Origin: Epiperipatus broadwayi
Taxonomy: Eukaryota; Animalia; Onychophora
Assembly (NCBI GenBank): GCA_028023455.1
Contig: JAQFVV010000006.1
Location: 11,966,001-12,030,000 of the forward strand
Direction of reading: 5' to 3'
Length of the DNA: 64,000 nucleotides
The translations under genes were made by a program, and so were the position numbers. The notes beneath the pieces were generated by a model. That model saw only the letters and a list, made by a program, of their open reading frames with translations, was not told where the DNA came from and ran no database searches. This document shows, piece after piece, positions 3,417 through 64,000 of this stretch. The first letter of the stretch is position 1; each line of letters opens with the position of its first letter.

Positions 3417-4695
3417 CTCTAACCAAATAGACTATTCTGTCAAAGACACCTGTTAGTAGAAATTTCATACCCTCAGGTGGGATGTAGCACCACATACTAT
3501 GGGGAAACCAAGGCCATTGTCCAAAATAGAGCTGCTCAGCGCATGTATACATATAGAAGAGCAAAAAAGAATAATGATAACTTCTCAATATTTTTCGAAC
3601 ATGAGAAGCAGGCCAGTCATGTGTTCAAACCCTGCAACCCCAAAATAGTGTGCTCTGAAGCCAATGATTGTAAAAGAAAGATCAAGGGGGCGTATTTTAT
3701 TATCAATGATAACAATGCGATCAATAGACGCGACACGTGCTTTGCTATTTCAAGAAAATGGACAAATTAGTTTACATACGCATTTGCATACATTATTATT
3801 TAGTAATATTACAGCAATGGTTTATAACCTATTTTGGCCATGAATATGAGGGAAAACTTCGAAAGTACCAGGCCTAGATTAATTTAATTTAATTGTTTTT
3901 GTTACTACTGATAGCTTCTTCTTCAGCGTGTTAAAGTGTTTATATATACTATATTTTTCTATGAACATCCACTTGTAGTATAAAGAACAGGGTTTAATAG
4001 TGTGGTTTCCAAACATTATAAATTATCCCAGTTAGACTAACAAGTAAACAACCCCATAAGTTAATAATGTGATAATCCATAATGTTTGGAAACCACTCAT
4101 TCATTTTACAATTTAAGAAAAAACGTGGAGAAATCAGGAGATTCCTCATAGATAAATAAGCACATGGAGTTTCTACTGACTGCTGCTTTTGACAAAATAA
4201 TCTAGATGGTTAGAGCATTGCCTTAAATTGAATATTCACAAATGCAAAGGTCATAGGTTCAAATCATTGGGGTTGATTACTTGACACCCTAATGTGGTAA
4301 TTCATAATGTTTGTAAATAACTCTGTTAACCTTGCCCTTTAAATAAAAAGTGAAAAAATCAAAACTAATCCTCGTAGATTAAGTATATGATCCCAGATTT
4401 AATTCCCTTATTAGTGTTGTCAATGATTAGGCCAAGAACAGTTGAAGAAGAGAGAATACTACTATTTAGAAACCTATTATATATTATCCTATGTGCTATT
4501 ACTAACAACTATATGTATTTAGAAATTTGAAATCAAATTCGAATTTTTCCAAAAACATTTAACAATTAATATGAGATGGTGGTAATTATTAATCCAACAT
4601 ATTAATGGACAATTTATGGTTGATGGATTATCTTTTTACCTTTTTTAAAAATCTTCAGAAAGGATGATTCATGCTCATTTATAAATTCTGCTTTT

Positions 4696-9247: not shown

Positions 9248-9715
9248 GAACAGGCAAAACTCACTATATATATATTGACATACACAGCGATCTAGAGTAA
9301 TCAATGGATGCCAGAAGGCTTGTGCATAAAATCCCCATCTAGTGCCTACTCATCCAATATCCCTAGACTAGTTTCTGGCTTATGGCCTTCATCAGTGAGG
9401 AGTCTTGGATCTGAGAGCACTGCACCTAGATCTTAGGATCTAATGCAACCCTCCAGCAACCACCTTTTATCTCCATTTAACTACAAAATTATGAGTCTTA
9501 AACTGAAAACACCTTAATGTTTTCAATCTAAGCCCATTAGCTTATATAGTCAAATGGGTCTGAACCCAGTTCAGTACCCATACACTTTGGTGTCTTTGGT
9601 TTTTTGGTATCCATTGATTACTCTAGCTTGCTGTATGTGGCAATATATATAGTGAGTTTTGCCTGTTTTAACAACAGTTATACACAAGCATAAGAGGTGG
9701 TGGTCATGTGATGTT
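9248..9715. mobile_element. HHR family 1 (retrozyme-like) insertion, two inverted arms
   Basis: Antisense arm about 9248-9605 carries an HHR on the minus strand at about 9360-9401. Sense arm about 9606-9715 ends at gtcatgtgatg. 12-bp TSD tatattttttta at 9236-9247 and 9716-9727. Confidence 0.85.
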
Positions 9716-10879
9716 TATATTTTTTTAAAATGTTTTTTTGTTTGTAAATGTATATTTCTAATCAACTCTGATTTATTGAATTCTAATATATAATAATGGT
9801 TTGATGTTAAAAACAAATGTTAAATGATTACAAAGTGTGCCCAGAGAGAACAATTAGATGCCAAACTGCAAGAGGATTAAAGACAGCAGTTTGAATATTT
9901 CAGATTGTTTTCGACAAAGTCTGATTAGGATCAAGGTAAGAATATTTATTACACTTTGCATAAGATGAAGTTAAGAGTTCCTGTGGAAGAATTTAGGGCA
10001 ATTTTTTAATATTTTAATTGACAATATTATTATTGCTATCACATTTTATCTATTCACATAACTTGGAATAAAAAGAATAAATTTATGAATTTTTATCCTA
10101 CTATAATATCAACTATTATAATTTTGTGCAACTAATACTCACTAGATGGCAGTGCTATATTTAACTCCCTAAAGTACCGCATATTATTCTTTTTCAGTGA
10201 GGAATACATCTCCAATAGCATTTTTTAATACTATCCAAAATGATACCCGAGGCCACAAAAGTACCCTAAAAGTTTAAACCCAAACTAATTTACTTATATT
10301 GCTATATAGATCTGACATAGGAATGCCTATATAGTGTAGTGATTTCAATTTCATACAAATCATAGCAAACTTTGATCCTATGTCAAAGATGGTATATACT
10401 TAAATTACAAATCATATGACTTATTTTGACATTTACAGTAGAATAGAAATTCATTCTTATTATAATAGTCAAGAGACACCTGTTATAAATGCAATCATTA
10501 TTTTTTTTGCCAAGACTCAGGTTGTGCTATAAAGGAAAGGTTATGCTGCAGGTGCATGGTTCCATGCTGCATTGGCATGACTAATATTTTGATACATTCT
10601 CTCAAGAATTGATAGACTTTGTCAAAACCAAAGAAAGAAAAAATTAAAATATTAATGAACAAAAAATATTGACCAGTTAAGCTTGTGCAAAACTATACTA
10701 TGCTTTAATGACATTTCTATAAATTTTAATTTTTTTTGCATTTGTTTTTAATAAATATTACTATGTTCATAGCATATAATTTTGATGCCTGGGGAGAAAA
10801 AGAGACTGAACTATGTTATAATGTTAAATCTATCAAACATCACATGACATCTGCTGACATGCTACATAGTGTAAGCTTT

Positions 10880-11030
10880 AATAATCAATGGATGCCAGAT
10901 GGTTATGCCTAATAAATTATTATCCACAGCTATCCAATATCCCCAGAATAGTTTCTAGCATAAAGCTTTCAACAGCAAGGAATTTTGGACTTTGGAGCAG
11001 TGCACTGGAATCTTTTGGATACATAGCTAC
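10880..11030 (-). mobile_element. Degenerate HHR family 1 fragment
   Basis: aatcaatggatgccaga...atccaatatccccagaatagtttctagc matches the family consensus. The core is decayed. Confidence 0.6.
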
Positions 11031-11224
11031 TGAAGTAGTTTCAAATCTATATAATTATAATCGAATTTGATTGAAAAGATGAACATGTTTTTCTACTGAG
11101 AATAATAACTTGATAGAAAAACAAAGAGGTTAAAGATCAAAAGTTGAGTAAAATGCATTAGAATCAAAAGATTCAGATACATTGTTCTAAGATCCAAAGC
11201 TCTTCACCAATAAAAATCATAAAC

Positions 11225-11800
11225 ACAAAGGATGGACTCTCCACCCAGTAGTGCTACTCAGTGCAAGCCAATTTAGCCTTTGTGTGAAAAGTTTGTGTAA
11301 GCATAAAGAATGGTGATCATATGATGCTTGTTGGTTTAATGTCAATCCTGCTCAATAGGATTATGGTAATTGTGGTTATTAAAGAACCAAAGACACCAAA
11401 AAGTATGGGTGTTGAACTGAGTTGATCTCTATGATTATATAAGCTAATAAGCTTGAAGTGAAACCATTATTGTGTTAATAAGGTAAAAGGTGGCTGTTGG
11501 AAAATTTCATTAGATCCTAAGATCTAGGTGTTATTGCTATCAGATTCAAGATTCCTACGATCTAGGTGAATTGCTCTCACATCCAAGGTTCCTCACTGAT
11601 GAAAGCCACAAGATAGAAACTGGTTTGAGGATATTGGATGAGTTGGCACTAGATAGGGATTTTATGCTCAAACCTAACCTTCCTGTATCTATTGATTACT
11701 TTAGCTTGCACTGAGTGGTGCTACTGTATGGAGAGTTTAGCCTTGGTATAGCAGCTTGTGTAAGCATAAAGAATGGTTATCATGTGATGTTTGGTGGTTT
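11225..11800. mobile_element. HHR family 1B insertion nested in an older HHR copy
   Basis: 16-bp TSD aataaaaatcataaac at 11209-11224 and 11801-11816. HHR on + at 11590-11631: TCCTCA-CTGATGA-AAGCCACAAGATA-GAAAC-TG-GTT-TGAGGA. Confidence 0.85.
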
Positions 11801-12379
11801 AATAAAAATCATAAACTAGTCTGTGGATATTAGATAGGGCAGTACTAGTTGAAGATTTATTAACCACTTCCATCTCATATTTATTGATTAATAAAAATTA
11901 CACTAGGTGGCGTAAATGTAGTGAGAAAAAATAAAAAGTTTAGATGTTCTGAACTAAGATTGAATGTAGAGATGTGCAGTCCAGAATAATTATTTAAAAT
12001 TCTTATGTCATTTATATACTTTAATTTTTGAGATTCTTTTAATTCGCAAATTTTTAATACTATTTTCATTAATATATACTATAAACAATTTATTAGAATA
12101 ATGCAATATTTGTATTCTTTATTTTCTGATTTTATGAGTATGGAGAAATTATGTGAAAATATACAAACACAACACTTAAACTATTATGTGGTACTTGATT
12201 TAATTATAACTGTCTATAAATAATATCAATGAATTTGCAACACTCTAGAAGAATTTATTGATGTGAGTTGTAGGTCACTGTTCAGTTAAGTGTACAAATA
12301 CTTAACCTACCTTCAATGCAAAATGGAATCATCCACAACTTCTACTAGTTTGCAGGCTTCAAGTATACTAAGAAACTAA

Positions 12380-26579: not shown

Positions 26580-27425
26580 TTACATGAAATAAGTATTACA
26601 TGAAATAAATAATACACGATCACGGTTTTAAAAATGTGTTACAATAGCTATTTTTACCTGCTATTGATAACTCGTGCATTATTATTTCATGTAATCATTA
26701 TTTAAATATATTATAGTTATCAACTACATTCAATTCATTTAATCTATTAACACGAGCAAAGCCATGAGTACAGCTAGTACTTATATAAGGTTATTCATCG
26801 AATAAGCATGTCTGAATATATTACTAAGATAGATCCCCGAAGAATCTTTTTGAAATGAACTTGTGAATAACGTCCATCTTTTGTTTGCAATTTCATTTAA
26901 AAGATTTCTTGGGAATTTTTGTTTGTGAATTATCTGTCATATATTCAAACTTGTTTGTTTTATAAATAGGTTTATATTCTTAGCATTACATATTTAATAA
27001 TCCATAAAGGTTTTACATGCTCATTAAAGACATACAAATATTTATATATTTAAAAAATGTATTTAGCAGACAACAACAACTGAAAAAAAAGGCGGGAAAA
27101 ATGTCGATTGTCTGCCATCTCTTCTGCAGAATGCTAAAAATAATTAAAAGTTAAAAAAACAAAAAAACAATCATGTTAATAAAAAAACAACAACTCTAAA
27201 TCAGGAGCCAATGTAATTTACTTTAATTGTAAATTTTGTTTTAAATTTTCTAACATAAATAAAATTTTACAGAAATAATATATTTTTATCTTTCGGAAAA
27301 AAATTAAAATGTTTGACTTTTTCTTTAGTCATTTTTCCCCAATAAAAAATCTCTATAGCAATATTTCCCCATCTTTTCTCATTTTGGAATAATGAATCTT
27401 TTATGTCTGGCAACATAAAATTATA

Positions 27426-27573
27426 CAGAGGCTAAACTCCCCTTACAATAGCACCACTCACTGCAAGCCAGAGTAATCAATGGATGCGTGGCGCTGCAGT
27501 ATGGAGAGTTTAGCGTCTGTGTAAATAGCTTGTGTAAGCATAAAGAATGGTGATCATGTGATGTTTAGTGGTT
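27426..27573. mobile_element. Minimal HHR family 1B insertion (termini only, no ribozyme)
   Basis: Two short inverted arms, a 54-nt tail, and 15-bp TSD caacataaaa(t/g)tata at 27411 and 27574. Confidence 0.75.
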
Positions 27574-27924
27574 CAACATAAAAGTATATATTATAAATAA
27601 GTTGAACTTTATAAGAGTAATTATTTATTTTACAGAGTGTTAGAAAACAAACAGACAGAAATAATAAATTCAAGACATGCATCAAAACATGCTTAAATAG
27701 AGGTACCAAAATTGAGTAATCAATCCAAACATGCAAATGAATAAATATCTAACCATCCATATCAACATATAGACAAAACCAGAAATCATTTTGTCTTGTA
27801 AATACAATATTTTATTCCAGAACAAGGATTTCATATTTAATCCTGGAAATTACCATTAGTATTTTCCTTTTCATATATCAACACCAGTCCCTAACAAACT
27901 ATTTGTAAAATAAATGATGATAAC

Positions 27925-36365: not shown

Positions 36366-37903
36366 AATATTGCATGATCACCATTTCTTATGTTGCTTAT
36401 AACTGTTATTAAAATGGGGAAAACTCTCTACACCTATTGCCACTCAATCCATGCCAGAATAATCAATGGATGCCAGAAGGCTTGTGCATAAAATCACCAC
36501 ATTTAGTGCCTACTCATTCAATATTCACAGACTAGTTTCTGGCTTGTGGCCTTCGTCAGTGAGGAGCCTTGGATCTAAGAGCACTGCGCCTAGATCTTAT
36601 GATCTAATACAACTCTCCAGAAGCCATCTTTTATCTCTATTTAACTACAAAACCATGAGTCTTAAATTGGAAAATATCGAAATATTTTCAATCCAAGCTC
36701 ATTAGCTTATATAGTCATGTAGGTCTGAACTGCAGTACCCATACATTTTGGTGACTTTGGTTCTTTAATAAGCATGGCCACCACTATTCGGCTAGGAGGA
36801 TTGGTTTTAAGCCAATAAACATCACATAATCACCATTTCTTATGCTTGCTTATAATGGTTATTGCAACAGGCAAGCTCTCTATACGTATTGCCACTCACT
36901 GTAAGACAGAGTAATCAATGGATGCCAGAAGGCTTGTGCATAAAATACCATCTAGTGCCTACTCATCCAATATCCCCTGACTAGTTTCTGGCTTGTGGTC
37001 TTCATCAGTGAGGAGCCTTGGATCTGAGAACACTGCACCTAGATCTTAGAATCTAATGCAACTCTCCAGCAGCCACCTTTTATCTCTACTTAACTACAAA
37101 ACCATGAGTCTTAAATTGAAAACACCATAATATTTTCAATTCAAGCTCATTAGCTTATATAGTCATATATATCTGACTCAATTCAGTATCCATACATTTT
37201 GGTGACTTTGGTTCTTTAATAACTGTAGCCACCACTATCCTATTAGGCAGGATTGGTTTTAAGCCAATAAACATTACATGATCACCATTTCTTATGCTTG
37301 CTTATAACTGTTATTTGGCAAAACTCTCTATAATTATTGCCACTCAGTGCAAGCCAGAATAATCAATGAAATTCCAGAAGGCTTGTGCATAAAGTCCCTA
37401 TCTAGTGCCCATTCATCCAATATCCTCAGACTAGTTTCTGGCTTGTGGCCTTCATCAGTGAAGGGTCTTAGATCTAAAAGCACTGCACCTAGATCTTAGG
37501 ATCTAATGCAGCCCTCCAACAGCTACCTTTTATTTCTACTTAACTACAAAACCATGAGTCTTAAAGTCACCAAAATGTGTGGGTACTGAACTGAGTTCAG
37601 ACCTATATGACTATATGAGCTAATGAGCTTGGATTAGAAATATTAATGTTTTTCTATTTAAGACCCATGGTTTTGAAGTTGAGATAAATAGTGGATGCTG
37701 GAGGGTTGCATTAAATTCTAAGATTTAGGTGCAGTGCTCTCAGATTCAAGGCTCCTCATGGATGAAGGCCACAAGCCAGCAACTAGTCTGGGGATATTGG
37801 ATGAGTAGGCATTAGATGGAGATTTTATGCACAAGCCTTTTGGAATCCATTGATTACTCTGGCTTGCACCGAGGGGCAATACATATAGTGAGTTTTGCCT
37901 GCT
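36366..37903. mobile_element. HHR family 1 tandem array (2.6 monomers, ~452-bp period) plus an inverted arm
   Basis: The unit anchor recurs at 36376, 36828 and 37280. Minus-strand HHRs have GUC sites at 36530, 36979 and 37429. The inverted arm 37565-37903 has a decayed HHR. 9-bp TSD ttaaaattc at 36357 and 37904. Confidence 0.9.
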
Positions 37904-38630: not shown

Positions 38631-39648
38631 TAATGCCGATTCTTTGGGAGTCTAACTTTGTGAATTGCTATAACAACATATTCACATGTGGTTTGTTTGG
38701 TCAATAGATTTATATTTTCGTCTTACACAATTGTCAATAAACAAAATTTTGTATTAGTATAATTGCCCTGTCAGGTTTAATGCAATTGTAGAGTATCAGC
38801 CTTTGTAGAATGAGGTCCTTGGACTGATTCCAGTTCCTGCTCTTCCAATGCTTAAATGTCTTATGAAATCCAAGCAGTCATGGCATTTGATTATTTATAT
38901 ATTTTGTATTGAATAGTTTATTGCTATGGAGTTCACAAAGAGCAAGAAGTAACAAAATTGGGCCATGATGTACAAAGCTAAGCATAGAGTTTGTCTCTTT
39001 ACACCTAAATACCCATGCAGGGCATAAATAAGTTAATAGTTTATTGCCCTGGAGTTTGTAATAAACGTGAGCCCCAGTAGTGGCAGAGCAGAGCCATAAT
39101 CCATGGGCTTCAATCTCAGATCCTGCAGCTCTTCTACTGTACCAAACTATGCGCAGCTATTTATCAATAAGCAGTTTTTAGCACAGCTGCAGAATAACCA
39201 ACTTAGAATTGGGAGGTCCCAGGATGGATTCTGTCACTCGCAGGTGTGGTGCTTAAATTTCTTACGAATTTCCAAGCAGTAACCCTTTTTCTTTGTTAAT
39301 AAGTAAGACTAAAACTTTCTCAAAGGGTTTTTATTTATAAAAGCACATTTTTTTCCGATGTTGGTTTGATTCTATTTTAAATTAAAATGAAGTAATAATT
39401 AAATCATTTATAGATTAAAAAAAAATAAAGATCATATAATAGACTATAAATAATACTGTTTTCAAATAATATAAACTAAAGTTTAATGCCATTACTTTAA
39501 ATAAGCAGATGGATAGAATTATAAGTAGATTAAAGATAAACAGAGCAAAACTCTCCATACAGTATTGCCACCTGTGCTAAACAGAGTAATCAATGGATGC
39601 CAGAAGGCTTGTGCATAAAATCCCTATCTAATGCCTACTCATCCAATA

Positions 39649-39690
39649 TCCCCAGACTAGTTTCTGGCTTGTGGCCTTCGTCAGTGAGGA
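39649..39690 (-). ncRNA. Type I hammerhead ribozyme, family 1
   Basis: Minus strand: TCCTCA-CTGACGA-A-GGC(CACAA)GCC-A-GAAAC-TA-GTC-TGGGGA. Stem I is extended by ATCCAA/TTGGAT. Confidence 0.8.
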
Positions 39691-40104
39691 GCTTTGGATC
39701 TGAGAGCACTGCATCTAGATCTTAGGATCTAATGCAACCCTCTAGCAACCACCTTTTATCTCTACTTAACTACTAAACTATGAGAATGAAATTGAAAACA
39801 CATAAAATATTTTCAATCTAAGCTCAATAGCTTAAACAGTCATATGGGTCTGAACTCAGTTCAGCACCCATATATTTTGGTGTCTTTGGCTCTTTTACAA
39901 CCATAGCCACCACTATCCTATTAGGCAGGATTGGTGTTAAACCATTAAGCATCACATGATCACATTTCCTATACTAGCACATTAATTGTTGATAAACAGA
40001 GCAAAACTCTCCATACAGTATTGCCACCTGTGCTAAACAGAGTAATCAATGGATGCCAGAAGGCTTGTGCATAAAATCCCTATCTAATGCCTACTCATCC
40101 AATA

Positions 40105-40146
40105 TCCCCAGACTAGTTTCTGGCTTGTGGCCTTCGTCAGTGAGGA
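40105..40146 (-). ncRNA. Type I hammerhead ribozyme, family 1
   Basis: Identical to 39649-39690, exactly 456 bp away. Confidence 0.8.
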
Positions 40147-40287
40147 GCTTTGGATCTGAGAGCACTGCATCTAGATCTTAGGATCTAATGCAACCCTCTA
40201 GCAACCACCTTTTATCTCTACTTAACTACTAAACTATGAGAATGAAATTGAAAACACATAAAATATTTTCAATCTAAGCTCAATAGC

Positions 40288-40329
40288 TCCTCACTGACGA
40301 AGGCCACAAGCCAGAAACTAGTCTGGAGA
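40288..40329 (+). ncRNA. Type I hammerhead ribozyme, family 1
   Basis: TCCTCA-CTGACGA-AGGCCACAAGCCA-GAAAC-TA-GTC-TGGAGA; the 5' extension of stem I is truncated at the arm junction. Confidence 0.75.
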
Positions 40330-40743
40330 TATTGGATGAGTAGGCATTAGATAGGGATTTTATGCACAAGCCTTCTGGCATCCATTGATTACTCTGTTTA
40401 GCACAGGTGGCAATACTGTATGGAGAGTTTTGCTCTGTTTATCAACAATTAATGTGCTAGTATAGGAAATGTGATCATGTGATGCTTAATGGTTTAACAC
40501 CAATCCTGCCTAATAGGATAGTGGTGGCTATGGTTGTAAAAGAGCCAAAGACACCAAAATATATGGGTGCTGAACTGAGTTCAGACCCATATGACTGTTT
40601 AAGCTATTGAGCTTAGATTGAAAATATTTTATGTGTTTTCAATTTCATTCTCATAGTTTAGTAGTTAAGTAGAGATAAAAGGTGGTTGCTAGAGGGTTGC
40701 ATTAGATCCTAAGATCTAGATGCAGTGCTCTCAGATCCAAAGC

Positions 40744-40785
40744 TCCTCACTGACGAAGGCCACAAGCCAGAAACTAGTCTGGGGA
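40744..40785 (+). ncRNA. Type I hammerhead ribozyme, family 1
   Basis: TCCTCA-CTGACGA-AGGCCACAAGCCA-GAAAC-TA-GTC-TGGGGA, 456 bp from the previous copy. Confidence 0.8.
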
Positions 40786-40963
40786 TATTGGATGAGTAGG
40801 CATTAGATAGGGATTTTATGCACAAGCCTTCTGGCATCCATTGATTACTCTGTTTAGCACAGGTGGCAATACTGTATGGAGAGTTTTGCTCTGTTTATCA
40901 ACAATTAATGTGCTAGTATAGGAAATGTGATCATGTGATGCTTAATGGTTTTAGATTAAAGAT

Positions 40964-41810
40964 GAGCAGATTGATAGATAGACTGACAGAAAAACAGAGA
41001 GATAGAATGCAGATAGAAAAATAGATAGATAGACATATAATCAGAAAGAGGCATATGGAAATAAGCAGATAGAGATCAAGTAGATAGATAGGTAAACAAC
41101 ATACTAATAAATAAATGAAGGTAGATAAATATATAGATAACTTATAGATAAATAAGTAGATAAAGGTAGATTGATAGACATATATAGACAAAGAGATAGA
41201 TAAATAGACTGATAAAGAGGAAAGCAGAGAATTGAAAAATAAATGGATAGACAAGTAATAAAAAAAAAAGACACTGATAAACAGGAAATCATACATATAT
41301 ATAGACAACATATAAATAGATAGATATATAGTTAACATATATATATATATAGACAGATAAAAATATAGATAGACAACATACATACATACATACATACATA
41401 CATACAGATAAAAATATAGATAGTCAGATAAATGGATAAGTAGATGGATAAATACAGATAAAACTAAGAAATAAAAGACAGATGGAAAGAGAGATAGATT
41501 TAAATAAAAATAAACAGAAACACAGTAAGATAGATAAATAAATAGTTAGGCATACAAACCGATAGATAGATATACATACAAGTAGATATGTAGATAGACA
41601 ATCAGATAGATGAGGAGATAGATGGATAAATATGATATATAGATAGATAAATAGACAGGCAAATAGAAGACAAGTAGATGGAAAGCCAGATAGATAAAGA
41701 AAATTGGAGACAAACAGATAAATAGACAAATAAATAGATGCACAAATCGACAGACATATACATATACACAGACAGAGACAAAAAATAAATAGATGGAATG
41801 GATATATAAG
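40964..41810. repeat. Degenerate (TAGA)n/(CATA)n low-complexity tract
   Basis: GATA/TAGA-rich throughout, with perfect (CATA)n near 41378-41404. It explains the YLSI-rich minus-strand ORFs. Confidence 0.9.
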
Positions 41811-42935
41811 TAGATTCGAAATATTAGAGGTTTTCAGCTAGAATTCATGGGTTATATCTGGCCTTGGTATATTTATTCATACATCACAAATATAGATTTT
41901 TAAAAACAAAACTTTTCTATTAAAAGAAAAGCCAAAAAACTTCGTATTAAAAACAATATTTTGCCATTCATTTTAACGTTTGAATTTATTTAATGTATTT
42001 ACTTATACTTTATGTTAGAAATGATAAATATTTTTTTTGAGAAATCATTTGCTTTTATTTAATTTAAAAATTGATTAAAATGAGAATCTATGAAGCTTGT
42101 AGAAAATGTGGGGATAATATATATATGAACAATCTGAGTCACCGATAATTTCATTATCCATTATATAGCTCGCTGTCAAAAAGTTTGATGGTCCTTGCTA
42201 GAAAAATCTCTAATCTCGGTACTGTAAGAGTTAAACTTTGATAAGATATTTTTTCTGTAATTAAACAGCGAGTTTGCTGTTTCAAACAATAACGGCTACT
42301 AACTTTGGACAGTACGGTATTCATCCATTTTGAGAACTCGGTCTAAAAACTTCCTTCCATGAGGTCAACTCTTTATTATTAAAAGTTATTAGACCTCCAC
42401 CCAGCAAGAGAAGATGACTACCTGATCATTACAAACAGAGAGCTTTAGTTTCATACTGAAAGACTAAGAATTCTTAAAAGTACTGAATGTTTTTCAAACT
42501 TACAGTTGTTGTAACAAAGAGGTCAAAAGAGTTGGTTTCACTCAAATGAACTTTACTGCAAATAGAATTTTCAAATGATATTATATTTCATTTTTTTTTC
42601 TTCTCCTGCTTTTTGATTTAATTTAAAATGACGGATAACTTTCTTCTGAGGTTTTGTAAATGTCTGAAATTCAGATGTATTTTAAAAAATTTGGACATTT
42701 ATTAATAGGAAAAGTGTAACTATATCTATATAATGAATAAGCTTTGCTTATTTATATATAGTTGTAAATAAGATCTAGAATTGTTTAATTCTTTATGTGG
42801 GTCGTGTTTATTGGTAGATTAATAGTTTAAACACCACACATATGCGCGATTGATAGAGAACGTATTTGCAGTACCAAAACTAATTCCATTTGCTATATTT
42901 AAAAGCAAACTAATTTCCTTTTGTTACTAATTGTA

Positions 42936-49567: not shown

Positions 49568-50132
49568 AAAACAGCCAAAACTCTCCATACAGTATTGCCA
49601 CTCAGTGCAAGCCAGAGTAATCAATGGATGACAGAAGGCTTGTGCATAAAATCCCCATCTAGTGCCTACTCATCCAATATCTCCTGACTAGTTTCTGGCT
49701 TGTGGCCTTCATCAGTGAGGAGCCTTGGATCTGAGAGCACTACATCTAGATCTTAGGATTTAATGCAACCCTCCAGCATCCACCATTTATCTCAACTACA
49801 AAACCATGAGTCTTAAATAGAAAAACACTAATATTTCCAATCCAAGTTCATTAGCTCATATAGTCATATAGGTCTGAACTCAGTTCAGTGCCTATACATT
49901 TTGGTGCCTTTGGTTTTTTATTAACCATAGTCACCACTATCATATTAGGCAGGATTGGTTTTAAGCCAATAAACATCACATGATCACCATTTGTTATGCT
50001 TGCTTATAACTGTTATTAAAACAGGTGAACCTCTCCATATAGTATTGCCACTCAGTGCAAGTCAGAGTGGCAATAGTATATGGAGAGTTTTGCATATTTT
50101 ACTAGCATAAGAAATGGTGATCATGTGATGTT
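49568..50132. mobile_element. HHR family 1 insertion inside the RTE
   Basis: Full antisense monomer with a minus-strand HHR at about 49681-49721, plus a short sense arm joined through GAGT microhomology. 11-bp TSD tacatactttt at 49557 and 50133. Confidence 0.88.
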
Positions 50133-50480
50133 TACATACTTTTTTATAAAACTCTTCCATAAATTTCATGATGTCAAATAGTTCCATCTTTTCTTCTTAT
50201 TACTGAAACAATTTTCCTTCCAATATGAGAATGTTGTTTTATACTTTTGATATCTTCTATAGCATTCCTTGCTAGTTTACAATTATATATTTTTTATATC
50301 ATCATTAATTATTTTTCATGCCAATTTATAAACCTTAATATTCCATTCTGCCTAATAGTTTCTTTTTTAAACTAATCTTATCACTTCTTTTCTTTATATA
50401 TTGTTCTGTAGAGAAAGTTTACTGGTAAATTGCTGCTTTTTTGTAATAACTGTTTTGTTTTTTGCAACTTTAAACTGTTT

Positions 50481-50953
50481 TAAACCATCAAACATCATAT
50501 GATCATCATTCTTTATGCTTACACAAGCTGTTTTTCATAAAGGCAAAACCCTCCATACAGTAGCGCCCCCCAGTGCAAGTCAAAGCAATCGATGGATGCA
50601 GGAAGGTTTGTGCATAAAATCCCTATCTAGTGCATACTCATCCAATATCCTCAGGCCAGTTTCTAGCTTGTGAATTTCATCAATGAGGAACCATGGATCT
50701 GAAAGGAATGCATCTAGATCTTAGGATCTATGACAATCCTCTAGCAGCCACCTTTTACTTTTTTAGGTAACTATAGCTTTTGAGTCCAAAATGAAAACAC
50801 AATAATGTTTTCAAGCCAAGCTAATTAGTTTGTATAATTGTGTAGATCTGAATTCAGTTCAGCATCCATACTTTTTGGTGTTTTTGGTAGTTTAATAACG
50901 ACATTAACCATAATTCTATTGGGCAGGATTGATATTAAACCATCAAACATCAC
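50481..50953 (-). mobile_element. HHR family 1B single monomer with terminal redundancy
   Basis: taaaccatcaaacatca occurs at 50481 and 50936 (455-bp period). The HHR core near 50648-50690 is decayed. Confidence 0.75.
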
Positions 50954-52149
50954 AGATTTCAATCAAATATGAAACACTGTTAAAGTTTATTATTTAAAAC
51001 AATGGAATATTTATGATGGTTAGGATTTGTTTTGCATGAATATGTGTCTTACATCTCATTAATCGATAACTATATTTCGTATTGAATTTAATAAGAACAT
51101 TACAATCTTAAAATACATATTATCTGATAGTCATAATCCAATTTTGCTACAAGTTTATTTAGATGTTTCTATGTCCATTTCCATTTAGAATTTTTCTTAA
51201 AAAAATTATAATATACAGTTTTTCTTTCTCGGCATACTCCACAATTCCATATCCCTCATTTCTTTCACCATATCCAAATTTACCCAGGTCACTTTTATCA
51301 GTTACTAATTCTAGCATTAAAATTTCCCACGATAATTTTAAAATATTTGGTCTGATCAAAAGTAATTTGTGCATCCATATAAAAAATTTCAACTTGTCAT
51401 TACAAATATATTGGGACATAATCTTGAATTATCTGCATTAGGTATCTCCTTATGAGAAAATTCATTGAAAATTACTTTAGTCATTTTGATATTTATCTTA
51501 TCATACTTTCTTACTTTCATCTGAACATGACTTTTATAAATATACAAAAATGTACTTAGAATGAATTGTAATCCAAAAAAGAATGTGAGATTAAAGAACA
51601 GAGGTGTGTATATTTATTTTGATTTCATCATGAGATGAGAGGATATATAAAGTCTCAATTGAAATATTAAATATGGTTAGTGTTTTAGTGTGGAAATGAG
51701 TGGCTAAGCATGCCACAACTCATAAATAAATTTAGCAGCAAGCAAAATTCCAAATTACGGATCATCTAGATGTAGCCATGGAATCAGGAAAGCTTGGTAA
51801 TATTTCTAAAAGCTGAATTTGTTTTGATAATAGCAACATTAAAAATATTTGCCACATAACAGTAGACATCATAATATGGGACAGATTCTGATAGGTTATA
51901 CCATATCTGATCTTTAATGGATTGGTCTCCACATGTTTGCATGATATAAGACAAACATTTATCAAGGAAAAATCATTCATAAAAATAGAAACCATAAAGA
52001 ATTGAACTTCAAGAAACAAATATTCAGCAAAATTGCAATTCTACAAAGTTCATCTAAAACTCATACTCTAGAATCATAGATGAAAACATTTAAATTAATT
52101 TATTCCTTATCTTTTCTTTTATTAAATTTAATTATATGTAAGTATATAG

Positions 52150-53406: not shown

Positions 53407-53806
53407 AAAACTCTCCAGACAGTAGTGACACTCAGTGCAAGCTAGAGTAATCAATGGATGCAAAAAGGTTTGTGCATAAAATCCCTATCTAGTGACTACT
53501 CATCCAATATCCCCAGATTAGTTTTTAGCTTATGGCTTTCATCAGTGAGGAGCATTGGATCTGAGAGGATAAGTCTTAAAATATATAGGTGTGGTGCTCT
53601 CAGATCCAAGGCTCCTCACTAATGAAAGCCAAAAGCTAGAAACTAGTCTGGGATATTGGATGAGTAGGCACTAGATAGGGATTTTATGCACAACGCTTCT
53701 TCGATTCATTGATTATTCTGGCTTGCACTGAGTGGCGCTACTGTGTGGAGAGTTTTTGCATCTGTTTTAACAGTTTGAGCAAGACTAAGAAAGGGTGATC
53801 ATGTGA
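53407..53806. mobile_element. HHR family 1B insertion, two inverted arms
   Basis: 15-bp TSD tgaacaataaagcca at 53392-53406 and 53807-53821. Both HHR cores carry point mutations. About 20 nt of filler lies at the junction. Confidence 0.85.
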
Positions 53807-54639
53807 TGAACAATAAAGCCATTAGTATTTTTAAAATTTATTTATTGATGAACTATAAAAATATTGTCAGGCATGATAAAAATATTATATATTATATCTG
53901 ATATAATTAATAATTTTTAAGAGTCATTAGTGACTAAGTCAGTTGTATTTATTTATATATAATTTAATCTGAAAATGTTAAAGCTTTTTTCAAAATAAAA
54001 ATATTTCAGGTTTTGTGAGTCAAAATAATGTAGTAAAATTAAGGATACCCATATCCTTAGATTCTTAATTCTTAATTTTACTAAATTATTTTAGTTTACA
54101 AATAGCTCACAGCAGAGAAAAGGGCTTCTTCAGCAGTCATTAATAAAAGGATAAGGAAGTATTTGTCAGGCTTGCCAGCTAGGGTGGGCTTGAATAGTAT
54201 TCCATTTTTTAAATACCTTTCACCTAAAAACATCTGCATATTTATTTAACAACCAACGATTACTTGTTAGAAGAATTGTTTATGGGCTAACTATAAGCGT
54301 AAAAAATCCTAAGCCTTTTGAAAATATTTTTATTTGACCTGAACACCCAAGCCATAGACGCAGTAGACAAATAAGCTGTTTATGCACTATAAGACCTTTT
54401 CTGGTACAAGATATATCAATTATAATTATATGGGTTCGAACCCAGACTTTCAAGCTCCCTTTTGTCATCCACTCCATCTTAAAAGTATGTATAATATACT
54501 TGTATTTAAATATCAATTATAATCTGTAAATATATTTTATATTTTTTTACATTTAATTCTTATGATTAAATTTAAAAACAAAAGGAAAGAAAAATTAAAA
54601 TGTAAGAAATATAGGTACAGTATGATTATGTCCTGTACA

Positions 54640-55389: not shown

Positions 55390-56655
55390 AAAAGAAGCAG
55401 ATGAAGAATACTTTTTTTTGGCAAAGTTATATACCAAATGTCCAAATGGTAAAGATGTATCAGATGATTGGAAGAATGAAATATTAATATTTAAAAAAGG
55501 TGATAAAAATATTAAAAATTACAGACTTATCAGTCTTTTATGAGTTCTACACAAAATTTTTACCAAGATAATTACAACTCTTCTAGAGCAAACTTCAGAT
55601 TTTAATCAAACAAAAGAACAAGCTGGATTTAAAAATTGTTTTAGTACAGTGGATCATATCCAAGTATTGAAAGAAGTTAGAAAAGAACTGATGAATATGA
55701 GTTGCCTTTATGCTTTGGATTTGTAGTTTATGGAAGGCATTTTTGCAAATAATGCTTTAGAGTTTGAGGAAATGCTGCAAGAGTTATCAGGTGAAAGTAA
55801 AAAAGTAGTACTAAGGATAAAAGTTAAAAAGACTAAAGTAATGTTCAATGGCTATTCTTAAAAAAAAAAAGAAACAAAGATTGATAAGTTAAAAAAAGTT
55901 AACTACTACAAATAACTTGGTCAGATTGAAATTAAAATTGGTTGGAGTCTTTTGGTAGAAATAACTTAATATTAAAAGGATATATATATATGCTTGAGTT
56001 GGTTTTTTAGATCTAATGTCCCAACTCCTCACTGAAGAGACCCATAGGTCGAAACCGGTCTGGGGATGGGGACAATCCAAGATAAAAATGATTTGAATGC
56101 CTTCTCTTGTAGTAGCATTTATCATAAATAAAAAAAAAAGCTTGTTTAGAGCTATTAGCATGCTCTTAATTTTATATATATATATATGCACTTGAAAAGG
56201 AAGGTTTTAAATAAATGTGTTTTATTAGTACTTACGTATGGATCTGTGACTCTGTGACTCGAAACATAATAGAAGAGCAATAAAAAGACTTCAGATTACT
56301 CATCAAAGTATGGAAAGATGCATATTAGGAGTAACAAGAAGAGATCAAAAACAAAATACATGCATGAGAGAACAAATAGATATTACTGACATTATTGAAA
56401 GAATTAAAAAGACTGAAGTGGAGTTGGGTTGGATAAATTGCTAGAAAAGATGATAATAGATAAAGAGTTGAAATCTTAAATTGGAATATAAAAGGTAAAA
56501 GACCTAGAAATAGATCACATGTGAGATGGATGGATGAAATAAGGCAGTGTACTGGTGTGATGTAGAGAAGAAACTAGAGCTCAAAGAAGATGGATTAAAC
56601 TTAGAGAGACTTTCATCCTGTAGTGGACTGATAATGATTTAAAATGATGATGATA
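55390..56655 (+). mobile_element. Decayed RTE LINE interrupted by an HHR element
   Basis: KKGDK..IKNYRLISL, EQAGF and DHIQV, then a 3' region matching 25080-25545. Confidence 0.8.
55994..56170 (+). ncRNA. Family 4 element with a canonical minimal type I hammerhead ribozyme (core 56026-56066)
   Basis: GTCCC-AAC-TCCTCA-CTGAAGA-GAC(CCATAG)GTC-GAAAC-CG-GTC-TGGGGA-TG-GGGAC. Flanked by duplicated tatatatatatgc. Confidence 0.85.
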
Positions 56656-59611: not shown

Positions 59612-59953
59612 AGTATATTCTCTTATTCTTCTTCACTTTCTTTGCATATCTTCATATAATCATATATATAGCTTATAACACTCTATTCATATACACATTA
59701 AATGCAACAAATTTTCTTCAAAACTTTTTATTTTCTTACAGTTTCGACTGTCCAGCAGTCTTCATCAGAGCTCTATCTCCTTCACTGCCTTAATTAAACT
59801 TTAAAGTTTAATTAAGGCAAGCTTAATTAAGGCAGTGAAGGAGATAGAGCTCTGATGAAGACTGCTGGACAGTAGAAACTGTAAGAAAGTAAAGAAGTTT
59901 TGAAGAAAATTTGTTGCATTTAACATGTGTATGAATAGAGTGTTATAAGCAAT
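59612..59953. mobile_element. Palindromic Penelope pLTR-like insertion with HHR-like cores (family 3)
   Basis: Arms about 59667-59800 and 59822-59953, with a ~55-nt left tail. 15-bp TSD agatagggtatagaa at 59597 and 59954. Core CTGATGA-A-GACTG(CTGGA)CAGT(C/A)-GAAAC in both arms. Confidence 0.8.
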
Positions 59954-63520: not shown

Positions 63521-64000
63521 AATCAAATTGTTTTTCTATAGAAACAGCAGAGGTTGTGTTATGGCCTCTCTATTTCTTTTGATAGCTTTTAAATCCATAC
63601 TGACTTCAGAAGCTATATGATCTCTTGCATTTGCAGTTATTCAGATTCTCAGCTAAATACTTCACGAGAAATTTAATTTTCCAATATAGTATAGGAAAAT
63701 TTACAGAAACATTTTATTGGTTCCTTTTTTTCTTTCCCTAATAATTGTAGTGTAGAAGTATTAGTTTTGTCTGAACTGCAATGTTTCTTAACAACTCAAA
63801 GGGTAGTTTTCCAGCTGAAGTCCACTCAGATTGTGTATAAAATCAAATGCCATGAGCCTACTTGCCCATCTGTCTACTGTGGGGAATCTCAGCCCAATCT
63901 ATCAATGTACATTGCAAAACACACCTATCTCTATAATAAGGCAAAAACAAGCAATAAATCTTTTTCAAACACGTTACCTCAACTGGACCCACTTTCATTG

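Follow-up and report, generated by a model that had tools for sequence, protein, structure and literature searches.

An insertion of 1,414 bp (positions 39538–40951) in the 64,000-nt stretch of Epiperipatus broadwayi DNA analysed here (contig JAQFVV010000006.1, positions 11,966,001–12,030,000; hereafter the window) is best explained as a non-autonomous, non-coding retrozyme of the metazoan non-LTR kind whose integration was carried out by a Penelope-like element (PLE) enzyme, a reading to which we assign a probability of roughly 0.8. The involvement of PLE machinery is inferred from the head-to-head arms of the insertion, its one-sided tail and a 12-bp target duplication. The element does not represent a new kind; it is a clean new addition to an established class. 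Animal retrozymes were described in 2020 (Cervera and de la Pena, PMC7229834), and a 2026 preprint (Li, Clavereau and Pollet, 10.64898/2026.07.22.740005) argues from their distribution and from pLTR phylogeny that they are derivatives of PLEs, and calls for work on the mechanism by which they are mobilised. Insertion footprints are not analysed in PMC7229834 or in the accessible parts of that preprint, and our literature search found no paper naming retrozyme together with head-to-head.

The insertion is flanked by a perfect 12-bp target-site duplication (TSD), TAGATTAAAGAT, with copies at 39526–39537 and 40952–40963; the last 3 nt of the left copy (GAT) may alternatively be element sequence, by way of an ATC microhomology. 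Between these copies lie two inverted arms, a minus arm of 751 nt or 1.65 units (39538–40288, minus strand) and a plus arm of 663 nt or 1.45 units (40289–40951, plus strand), the latter starting at 40273 if the junction overlap is counted. Over 627 nt the two arms show 99% complementarity; they are arranged head to head, with their hammerhead-sense 3′ ends at the outer boundaries and their 5′ ends meeting centrally. At the inner junction (40273–40288), where the 5′ end of the minus arm lies at unit position 279, the arms overlap by 16 nt in an inverted microhomology, which matches the minus arm exactly, agrees at 12 of 16 positions with the sequence native to the region upstream of the plus-arm hammerhead, and includes the palindrome AGCT. 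The 3′ end of the minus arm, facing outward at 39538, is the short end, at unit position 117–120 past the predicted cleavage site, and the 3′ end of the plus arm, facing outward at 40951, is the long end, at unit position 172 past that site. The resulting “tail” (40897–40951, plus strand) reaches ~52–55 nt past the site of the short end and is present in the plus arm only. Neither end of the insertion falls at a ribozyme cleavage site. When the assembly was searched with both flanks for an empty-site allele, only the self match was returned. The right flank is a GATA-rich repeat, and the window as a whole has a G+C content of 29% within a genome of 5.6 Gb.

A complete unit, measured from cleavage site to cleavage site (40324–40779, plus strand), is 456 nt long with 39% G+C. 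The units are non-coding, the longest open frame in a dimer being 61 codons, and blastx against the 782-aa PLE protein described below gave no match below E = 1. The insertion consists of such repeated units with a type I hammerhead, and has no LTR, PBS or PPT. Across the four partial units a single base differs (G/A at unit position 4, in helix I of the first plus copy), the only further mismatches being four within the junction overlap. This one difference among four unit copies, together with the perfect TSD, indicates that the insertion is very recent.

Within the insertion the 30-nt motif CTGACGAAGGCCACAAGCCAGAAACTAGTC occurs four times, twice on each strand. The plus-strand copies lie at 40294–40323 and 40750–40779, with GTC starting at 40321 and 40777, and the minus-strand copies at 39655–39684 and 40111–40140, with the triplets at 39655 and 40111; copies on the same strand are spaced by exactly 456 nt. 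Extended to their helices, the two minus-strand hammerhead motifs cover 39641–39699, where helices Ib and Ia, the core and helices II and III were recognised and cleavage is predicted 3′ of the C at 39655, and 40097–40155, with cleavage predicted 3′ of the C at 40111. The first plus-strand motif (40288–40329; predicted cleavage between 40323 and 40324) carries junction sequence in place of the native 5′ strand of helix Ib, and its helix Ia (UGGAGA) contains a C.A mismatch. The second is complete (40735–40793; predicted cleavage between 40779 and 40780) and reads AUCCAA-AGC-UCCUCA-CUGACGA-A-GGC-CACAA-GCC-A-GAAA-CUAG-UC / UGGGGA-UA-UUGGAU. A loose hammerhead pattern matched 24 times in the window against 5.5 expected, while the exact 30-nt core, with N7 as C or U, matched 38,024 times in the genome against 0 for a reversed control. 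On both counts the motif is not a product of chance.

The first-pass annotation had described a young element without an ORF, composed of tandem monomers, bearing four near-identical motifs (two per strand, 456 nt apart) inside a perfect 12-bp TSD, and had placed it among metazoan non-LTR retrozymes. All four motifs were located at the triplets listed above, the TSD was recovered at both flanks, and the lack of an ORF and the youth of the element are borne out by the frame lengths, the blastx result and the near-identity of the four units outside the junction. The class assignment likewise agrees with PMC7229834, in that units of ~456 nt, a minimal dimer-type type I hammerhead and dispersed copies were found. 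As for the tandem monomers, the 456-nt repeat units hold but the single array does not, since the units are divided between two inverted head-to-head arms; that annotation had counted two motifs per strand without interpreting the PLE-type layout and its one-sided tail. The ~456-nt linear or circular RNA proposed in that annotation is at present a prediction. Like metazoan non-LTR retrozymes, the element is built of units without an ORF, each a few hundred nt long and bearing a single type I hammerhead; it further has multi-unit copies of low G+C, TSDs longer than 4 bp, a rod-like predicted fold and a PLE-rich host genome. Unlike the long tandem arrays of those retrozymes, its copies, which are known here from DNA alone, are short dispersed insertions with two inverted arms.

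All positions of the conserved hammerhead core (C3 U4 G5 A6 N7 G8 A9 / G12 A13 A14 / A15.1–U16.1 / H17) were found to be occupied as expected, and the core CUGA(C/U)GA ... GAA-A ... U-C is kept in the four copies, in diverged subfamilies and in the 38,024 exact copies. Helix I is open and comprises 6 bp (Ia), a 3x2 internal loop and then 5–6 bp (Ib), and helix II has three Watson–Crick pairs. Helix III is a perfect 6-nt palindrome, ACUAGU, which with only two central nucleotides can form no hairpin, implying that the motif would act as a dimer. Judged by these features, the motif belongs to the dimer type of type I hammerheads. A palindromic helix III and action as a dimer are known for the hammerheads of newt, Schistosoma, axolotl and PLEs (PMC4209133, PMC7229834). 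With newt satellite 2, Schistosoma Sm-alpha and PLE hammerheads the present motif shares its core (CUGANGA...GAAA...UH), a helix I of 6 bp, a short helix II and a palindromic helix III for which two copies are needed (PMC4209133, PMC7229834); it differs from them in the 6-nt helix III palindrome without a possible hairpin, in an extra unpaired A between C11.1 and G12, and in going undetected by Rfam models.

The base of stem II is the part of the motif that departs from the canonical form. Stem II (GGC/GCC) is flanked by one unpaired A on each side, and G10.1–C11.1 does not directly abut A9 and G12; taken together, the two unpaired As may be viewed as an A.A pair in the position where G10.1–C11.1 would ordinarily adjoin the core. 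PLE hammerheads characteristically have an unpaired nucleotide between A9 and 10.1 (PMC4209133), and the present motif resembles them in having one after A9. For the extra A between C11.1 and G12, by contrast with that after A9, no tested precedent was found in the literature, and this counts against the best explanation. The closest precedent for the stem II base is the active U.U variant of axolotl, HHR_Amex2, likewise a high-copy retrozyme hammerhead with a mismatch at this position, whose cleavage is weak in monomeric form and efficient in dimeric form (PMC7229834); the mismatch is U.U in axolotl and A.A here, where it is known from sequence alone.

The first-pass annotation had called the motif a type I hammerhead and had proposed a search with Rfam hammerhead models as a check. 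The type I call is upheld as regards the full core, the helices and their covariation, and needs amendment at the stem II junction, with its unpaired A on each side. The proposed check, by contrast, came out negative despite the structural and covariation support for the motif: the Rfam hammerhead models (Hammerhead_1, HH9 and others) gave no match at the gathering score across the whole window, and none at E ≤ 10 for the insertion region or for a 66-nt slice, a result that counts against the preferred reading. The sole Rfam match, to MIR7533, was rejected as a microRNA, as it reflects the long inverted repeat. A sister hammerhead family, which scores 32–40 bits in Rfam, was located at window positions 56014–56083 and at loci L032–L034. 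Helix Ia is the same in the two families, while helices Ib (GUCCC/GGGAC), II (GACC/GGUC) and III (ACCGGU) of the sister family differ in a compensating manner. In an alignment of 11 sequences, which represent essentially two families and few independent events, 90.7% of cells pair and six pairs change on both sides, whereas in slid controls at most 49% of cells pair and at most one pair changes on both sides. Between these two families, covariation supports an open helix I and a total of three helices surrounding the core.

The sole common core variant lies at the free position N7 (C or U), and a C-to-U change seen in runs from other organisms preserves a G.U pair in helix II. Among diverged copies, conservation of the hammerhead did not exceed that of the neighbouring 60–120 nt, a profile which is little informative either way, given neutral decay of the copies and an excess of 3′ parts among them. 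When two hammerhead segments were folded together with RNAcofold, a swap of helix I was preferred and the helix III dimer was not predicted; this result was given no weight, since nearest-neighbour energies do not model the hammerhead core.

The same layout recurs across the genome. Mapping of the unit onto 30 loci identified 19 complete head-to-head insertions on other contigs, and in every one the minus arm lies to the left and the plus arm to the right. Each of the 19 has one short outer end (…GCTCTGTTTA(TC)) and one long outer end (…CATGTGAT or …GCTTAATGGTTT(AA)), the latter lying 40–55 nt further out; in the numbering of the unit-to-locus mapping, these ends fall at unit positions ~169–178 and ~211–227 in 19 of 19 cases. 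Relative to the ribozyme cleavage site, the 3′ ends are fixed at ~117–120 nt and ~160–174 nt past it. Clear TSDs of 10–17 bp were found for 18 of the 19 insertions, and no two of these share a target sequence. Within the window, three older insertions belonging to related subfamilies (36373–37898, 49569–50134 and 53407–53808) have the same layout, and across these and the 19 insertions on other contigs TSD length ranges from 9 to 17 bp. On contig C1, all ten adjacent pairs of cores on opposite strands run minus then plus, never the reverse. With target sites oriented by the side of the tail, an A was found at −2 of the TSD in 16 of 18 cases and a T at +2 in 15 of 18, a symmetric context that is only suggestive of the nick sites, as the TSD edges are slightly ambiguous through microhomology.

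Inner junctions, on the other hand, vary, as do arm lengths, which range from 0.4 to 3.6 units per arm among copies (on the fixed ends, see above). The junctions are often near-symmetric or located at inverted microhomology, and the 16-nt inverted microhomology junction recurs in ~9 independent loci. Units within one insertion are 93.8–99.6% identical and those of different insertions 96.1% identical, values beside which the copy at 39538–40951 is among the youngest; subfamilies are 75–85% identical overall. The family is thus dispersed and high-copy, with TSDs of variable length. Four runs, from four organisms and four studies, yielded thousands of short contigs of the family at 90–99% identity and without insertion flanks; these are contigs of uncertain kind, none on record as RNA, which show presence and carry no information on ends or strand. 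No transcript, cleavage product or circle was seen in them, which counts against the preferred reading. The family is therefore common to related organisms and older than the insertion at 39538–40951.

Autonomous PLEs are present in the same genome as the retrozyme. One extremely abundant autonomous family, with ~217,000 first-look candidates, has an ORF of up to 782 aa that contains the Pfam domain RVT_1, and PLE fragments lie within the window at 3447–3761 and 63827–63967. Copies of this family end 150–169 nt or 188 nt past the stop codon, corresponding to 59–78 nt or 97 nt past their own hammerhead cleavage site. All seven head-to-head PLE insertions examined have one long and one short arm, together with TSDs of 13–19 bp or microsatellite targets. 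The retrozyme itself shows the PLE footprint, with an inverted 5′-truncated copy, 3′ ends facing outward, a tail at one end and TSDs of variable length. It resembles PLE insertions further in its AT-rich or microsatellite targets and in having two internal start sites downstream of the hammerhead, which lie 117–174 nt past the cleavage site here and 59–97 nt past it in the PLE of the same genome; the tail is 40–55 nt here and 30–40 bp in published PLEs (PMC8557442, PMC3846280, PMC11167929). Unlike PLEs, it lacks an RT/GIY-YIG ORF, and similarity to the PLE family read here was not detectable. A search for a parent PLE, by blastn of the unit against 30 PLE loci and blastx against the 782-aa protein, found no similarity, nor did the 3′ part of the unit resemble the pLTR of that one PLE family. 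The hammerhead of the autonomous family is of the A3–U8 type, unlike that of the retrozyme; this difference, the unlike distances from cleavage site to ends and the lack of sequence similarity all weigh against the preferred reading. Local folding at the two start sites of the retrozyme and the PLE revealed no shared or significant structure.

These footprints can be set beside published work on PLEs. In vitro, both DNA strands are cleaved and then extended by purified PLE protein, which initiates reverse transcription at two neighbouring sites within the RNA, the distance between them matching the length of the tail (PMC11167929). One-sided tails have been described in several studies of PLE insertions (PMC8557442, PMC3846280, PMC11167929), the tail often being at one end only with an inverted 5′-truncated copy alongside (PMC8557442, PMC3846280). 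In the mechanism we propose, the PLE GIY-YIG endonuclease would nick both target strands ~10–17 bp apart, and each nicked 3′ end would prime reverse transcription that starts inside the RNA and not at its end. The two antisense cDNAs would then be joined where pairing is possible, or one of them would snap back, and repair would leave a head-to-head repeat with a tail on one side and a TSD. Every arm crosses at least one cleavage site, so a linear cleaved monomer would not have served as template; an uncleaved multimeric transcript would, or a circular monomer undergoing rolling-circle copying. Multimeric transcripts are presumably cut by the hammerhead into 456-nt units, and ligation of these could give rod-like circles. 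The predicted fold of the unit at 40324–40779 is a branched rod with a minimum free energy of −155.3 kcal/mol (z = −8.1), and none of 100 shuffled sequences was as stable; folds of this kind are reported for circles of retrozymes.

Three other routes by which such copies could have spread were weighed against integration by a PLE enzyme. Spread of a satellite or minisatellite at the DNA level, by unequal crossover or segmental duplication and with no RNA intermediate, would suit tandem units at high copy number; it is contradicted by a footprint in which copies are dispersed over thousands of separate loci, each with its own TSD, and in which 3′ ends are fixed while the 5′ junction and the number of units per arm vary, and we regard it as close to negligible. 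A foldback-type or MITE-like DNA transposon, with the inverted arms as terminal inverted repeats, is also exceedingly unlikely. The near-complete complementarity of the arms (99% over 627 nt) and the match of the region to a long-hairpin miRNA model are what such an element could produce, but its termini would not be expected to be unequal, short against long, in every copy, nor its TSDs to vary from 9 to 17 bp, nor its inner junction and arm lengths to differ from copy to copy; moreover, RT-encoding PLE copies share the layout, and neither precise excision footprints nor a transposase-encoding relative with the same termini was seen. Mobilisation as a SINE-like element by a LINE in place of a PLE is very unlikely too, even though the original description of non-LTR retrozymes called them no more than non-LTR elements whose TSDs exceed 4 bp (PMC7229834): the insertions have no A-rich or microsatellite 3′ tail, and head-to-head double arms with a one-sided tail are not LINE features (PMC8557442, PMC11167929).

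A different alternative accepts that the element is mobilised by a PLE and concerns only its ribozyme, which might be a catalytically dead relic that hitch-hikes with the element, no monomeric or circular RNA being made. We consider this possible but somewhat doubtful. The lack of an Rfam match and the non-canonical base of stem II would both be explained, and the arms always read through cleavage sites; in addition, minimal PLE hammerheads cleave poorly in vitro (PMC4209133), and PLE insertion in vitro proceeds without hammerhead cleavage (PMC11167929), which is therefore dispensable there. A relic would not, however, be expected to keep all its catalytic core bases in 38,024 copies and in subfamilies only 75–85% identical, to confine its common variation to N7 or to wobble-compatible changes, or to differ from a sister family by compensatory changes in helices I, II and III, and in axolotl a U.U mismatch at the equivalent position does not prevent cleavage (PMC7229834).

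Under the preferred reading of a retrozyme integrated by a PLE enzyme, the ends, tail and junctions of the young insertions reproduce the in vitro behaviour of purified PLE protein. A broader proposal, which we put forward tentatively and consider less probable than not to hold in full, is that the rule of one short and one long end (19 of 19 insertions on other contigs, the copy at 39538–40951, the three older copies in the window and seven of seven PLE insertions), taken with the symmetry of the sequence around the nicks (A at −2, T at +2), may constitute direct genomic evidence of ordered, two-ended PLE integration of animal retrozymes, in which the two DNA ends use different internal RNA start sites; and that the hammerhead present in some 38,000 copies, whose stem II has an unpaired A to either side, may be an active core variant, dependent on a dimer or on protein, that current models miss. 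Standard searches with covariance models miss this hammerhead variant, which is very abundant. The copy at 39538–40951 is valuable mainly as a textbook example of a phenomenon that is common in this genome, and the presence of one short and one long end in each insertion is a rule that any model of PLE integration must explain.

Besides the young insertion of the 456-nt unit, the window holds three older complete insertions of related subfamilies (36373-37898, 49569-50134 and 53407-53808), each consisting of a minus arm followed by a plus arm, together with fragments of such subfamilies at 9294-9717, 10882-11810, 27422-27578 and 50477-50954, all at 75-90% identity to the unit. In all three complete older copies one outer end was short and the other long, and their target-site duplications (TSDs) measured ~9, 11 and 15 bp. 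The retrozyme-like superfamily alone takes up several kb of the 64-kb window. A sister hammerhead family was found on the plus strand at 56014-56083, with a canonical G10.1-C11.1 pair, a helix III of ACCGGU and a helix Ia in common with the 456-nt-unit family; with Rfam Hammerhead_HH9 this copy gave a score of 32 bits, which falls short of the gathering threshold, and relatives elsewhere in the genome reached 35-40 bits against Hammerhead_1.

An Rfam MIR7533 match within the young insertion (40068-40366; 109 bits, short of the 230-bit gathering score) arises from the insertion's own inverted arms and does not represent a microRNA gene. To its right, the insertion is flanked by ~850 nt of GATA-rich repeat (40968-41815), which has matches of ~70% identity on many contigs, and a 154-aa minus-strand ORF in this low-complexity sequence (40931-41395) is probably spurious.

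The window also carries traces of Penelope-like elements (PLEs). C-terminal fragments of PLE ORFs lie at 3447-3761 (plus strand; 57% identity over 105 aa to the 782-aa PLE of the same genome) and 63827-63967, the former followed by a hammerhead-like motif (~3838-3875) of the A3-U8 type, in which AUGAAUA replaces CUGANGA. At 59737-59768 (minus) and 59852-59883 (plus) lie two minimal hammerhead motifs of the PLE type, with the pattern CUGAUGA-A-GACUG...CAGUC-GAAAC; they face each other head-to-head, here too in the order minus then plus.

Unequal 3' ends, one long and the other short, were likewise seen in all seven examined head-to-head insertions of the autonomous PLE family (loci L043, L048, L049, L051, L055, L061 and L063), two of which were located in (TAA)n/(TTA)n microsatellites. 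For the retrozyme-like elements, target sites were compared across 18 insertions among loci L003-L030, each oriented by the side bearing the tail, the extra sequence of the long-end arm. An A was present two bases upstream of the TSD in 16/18 and a T two bases downstream in 15/18. This symmetric preference suggests that the two strands are nicked in a shared sequence context.
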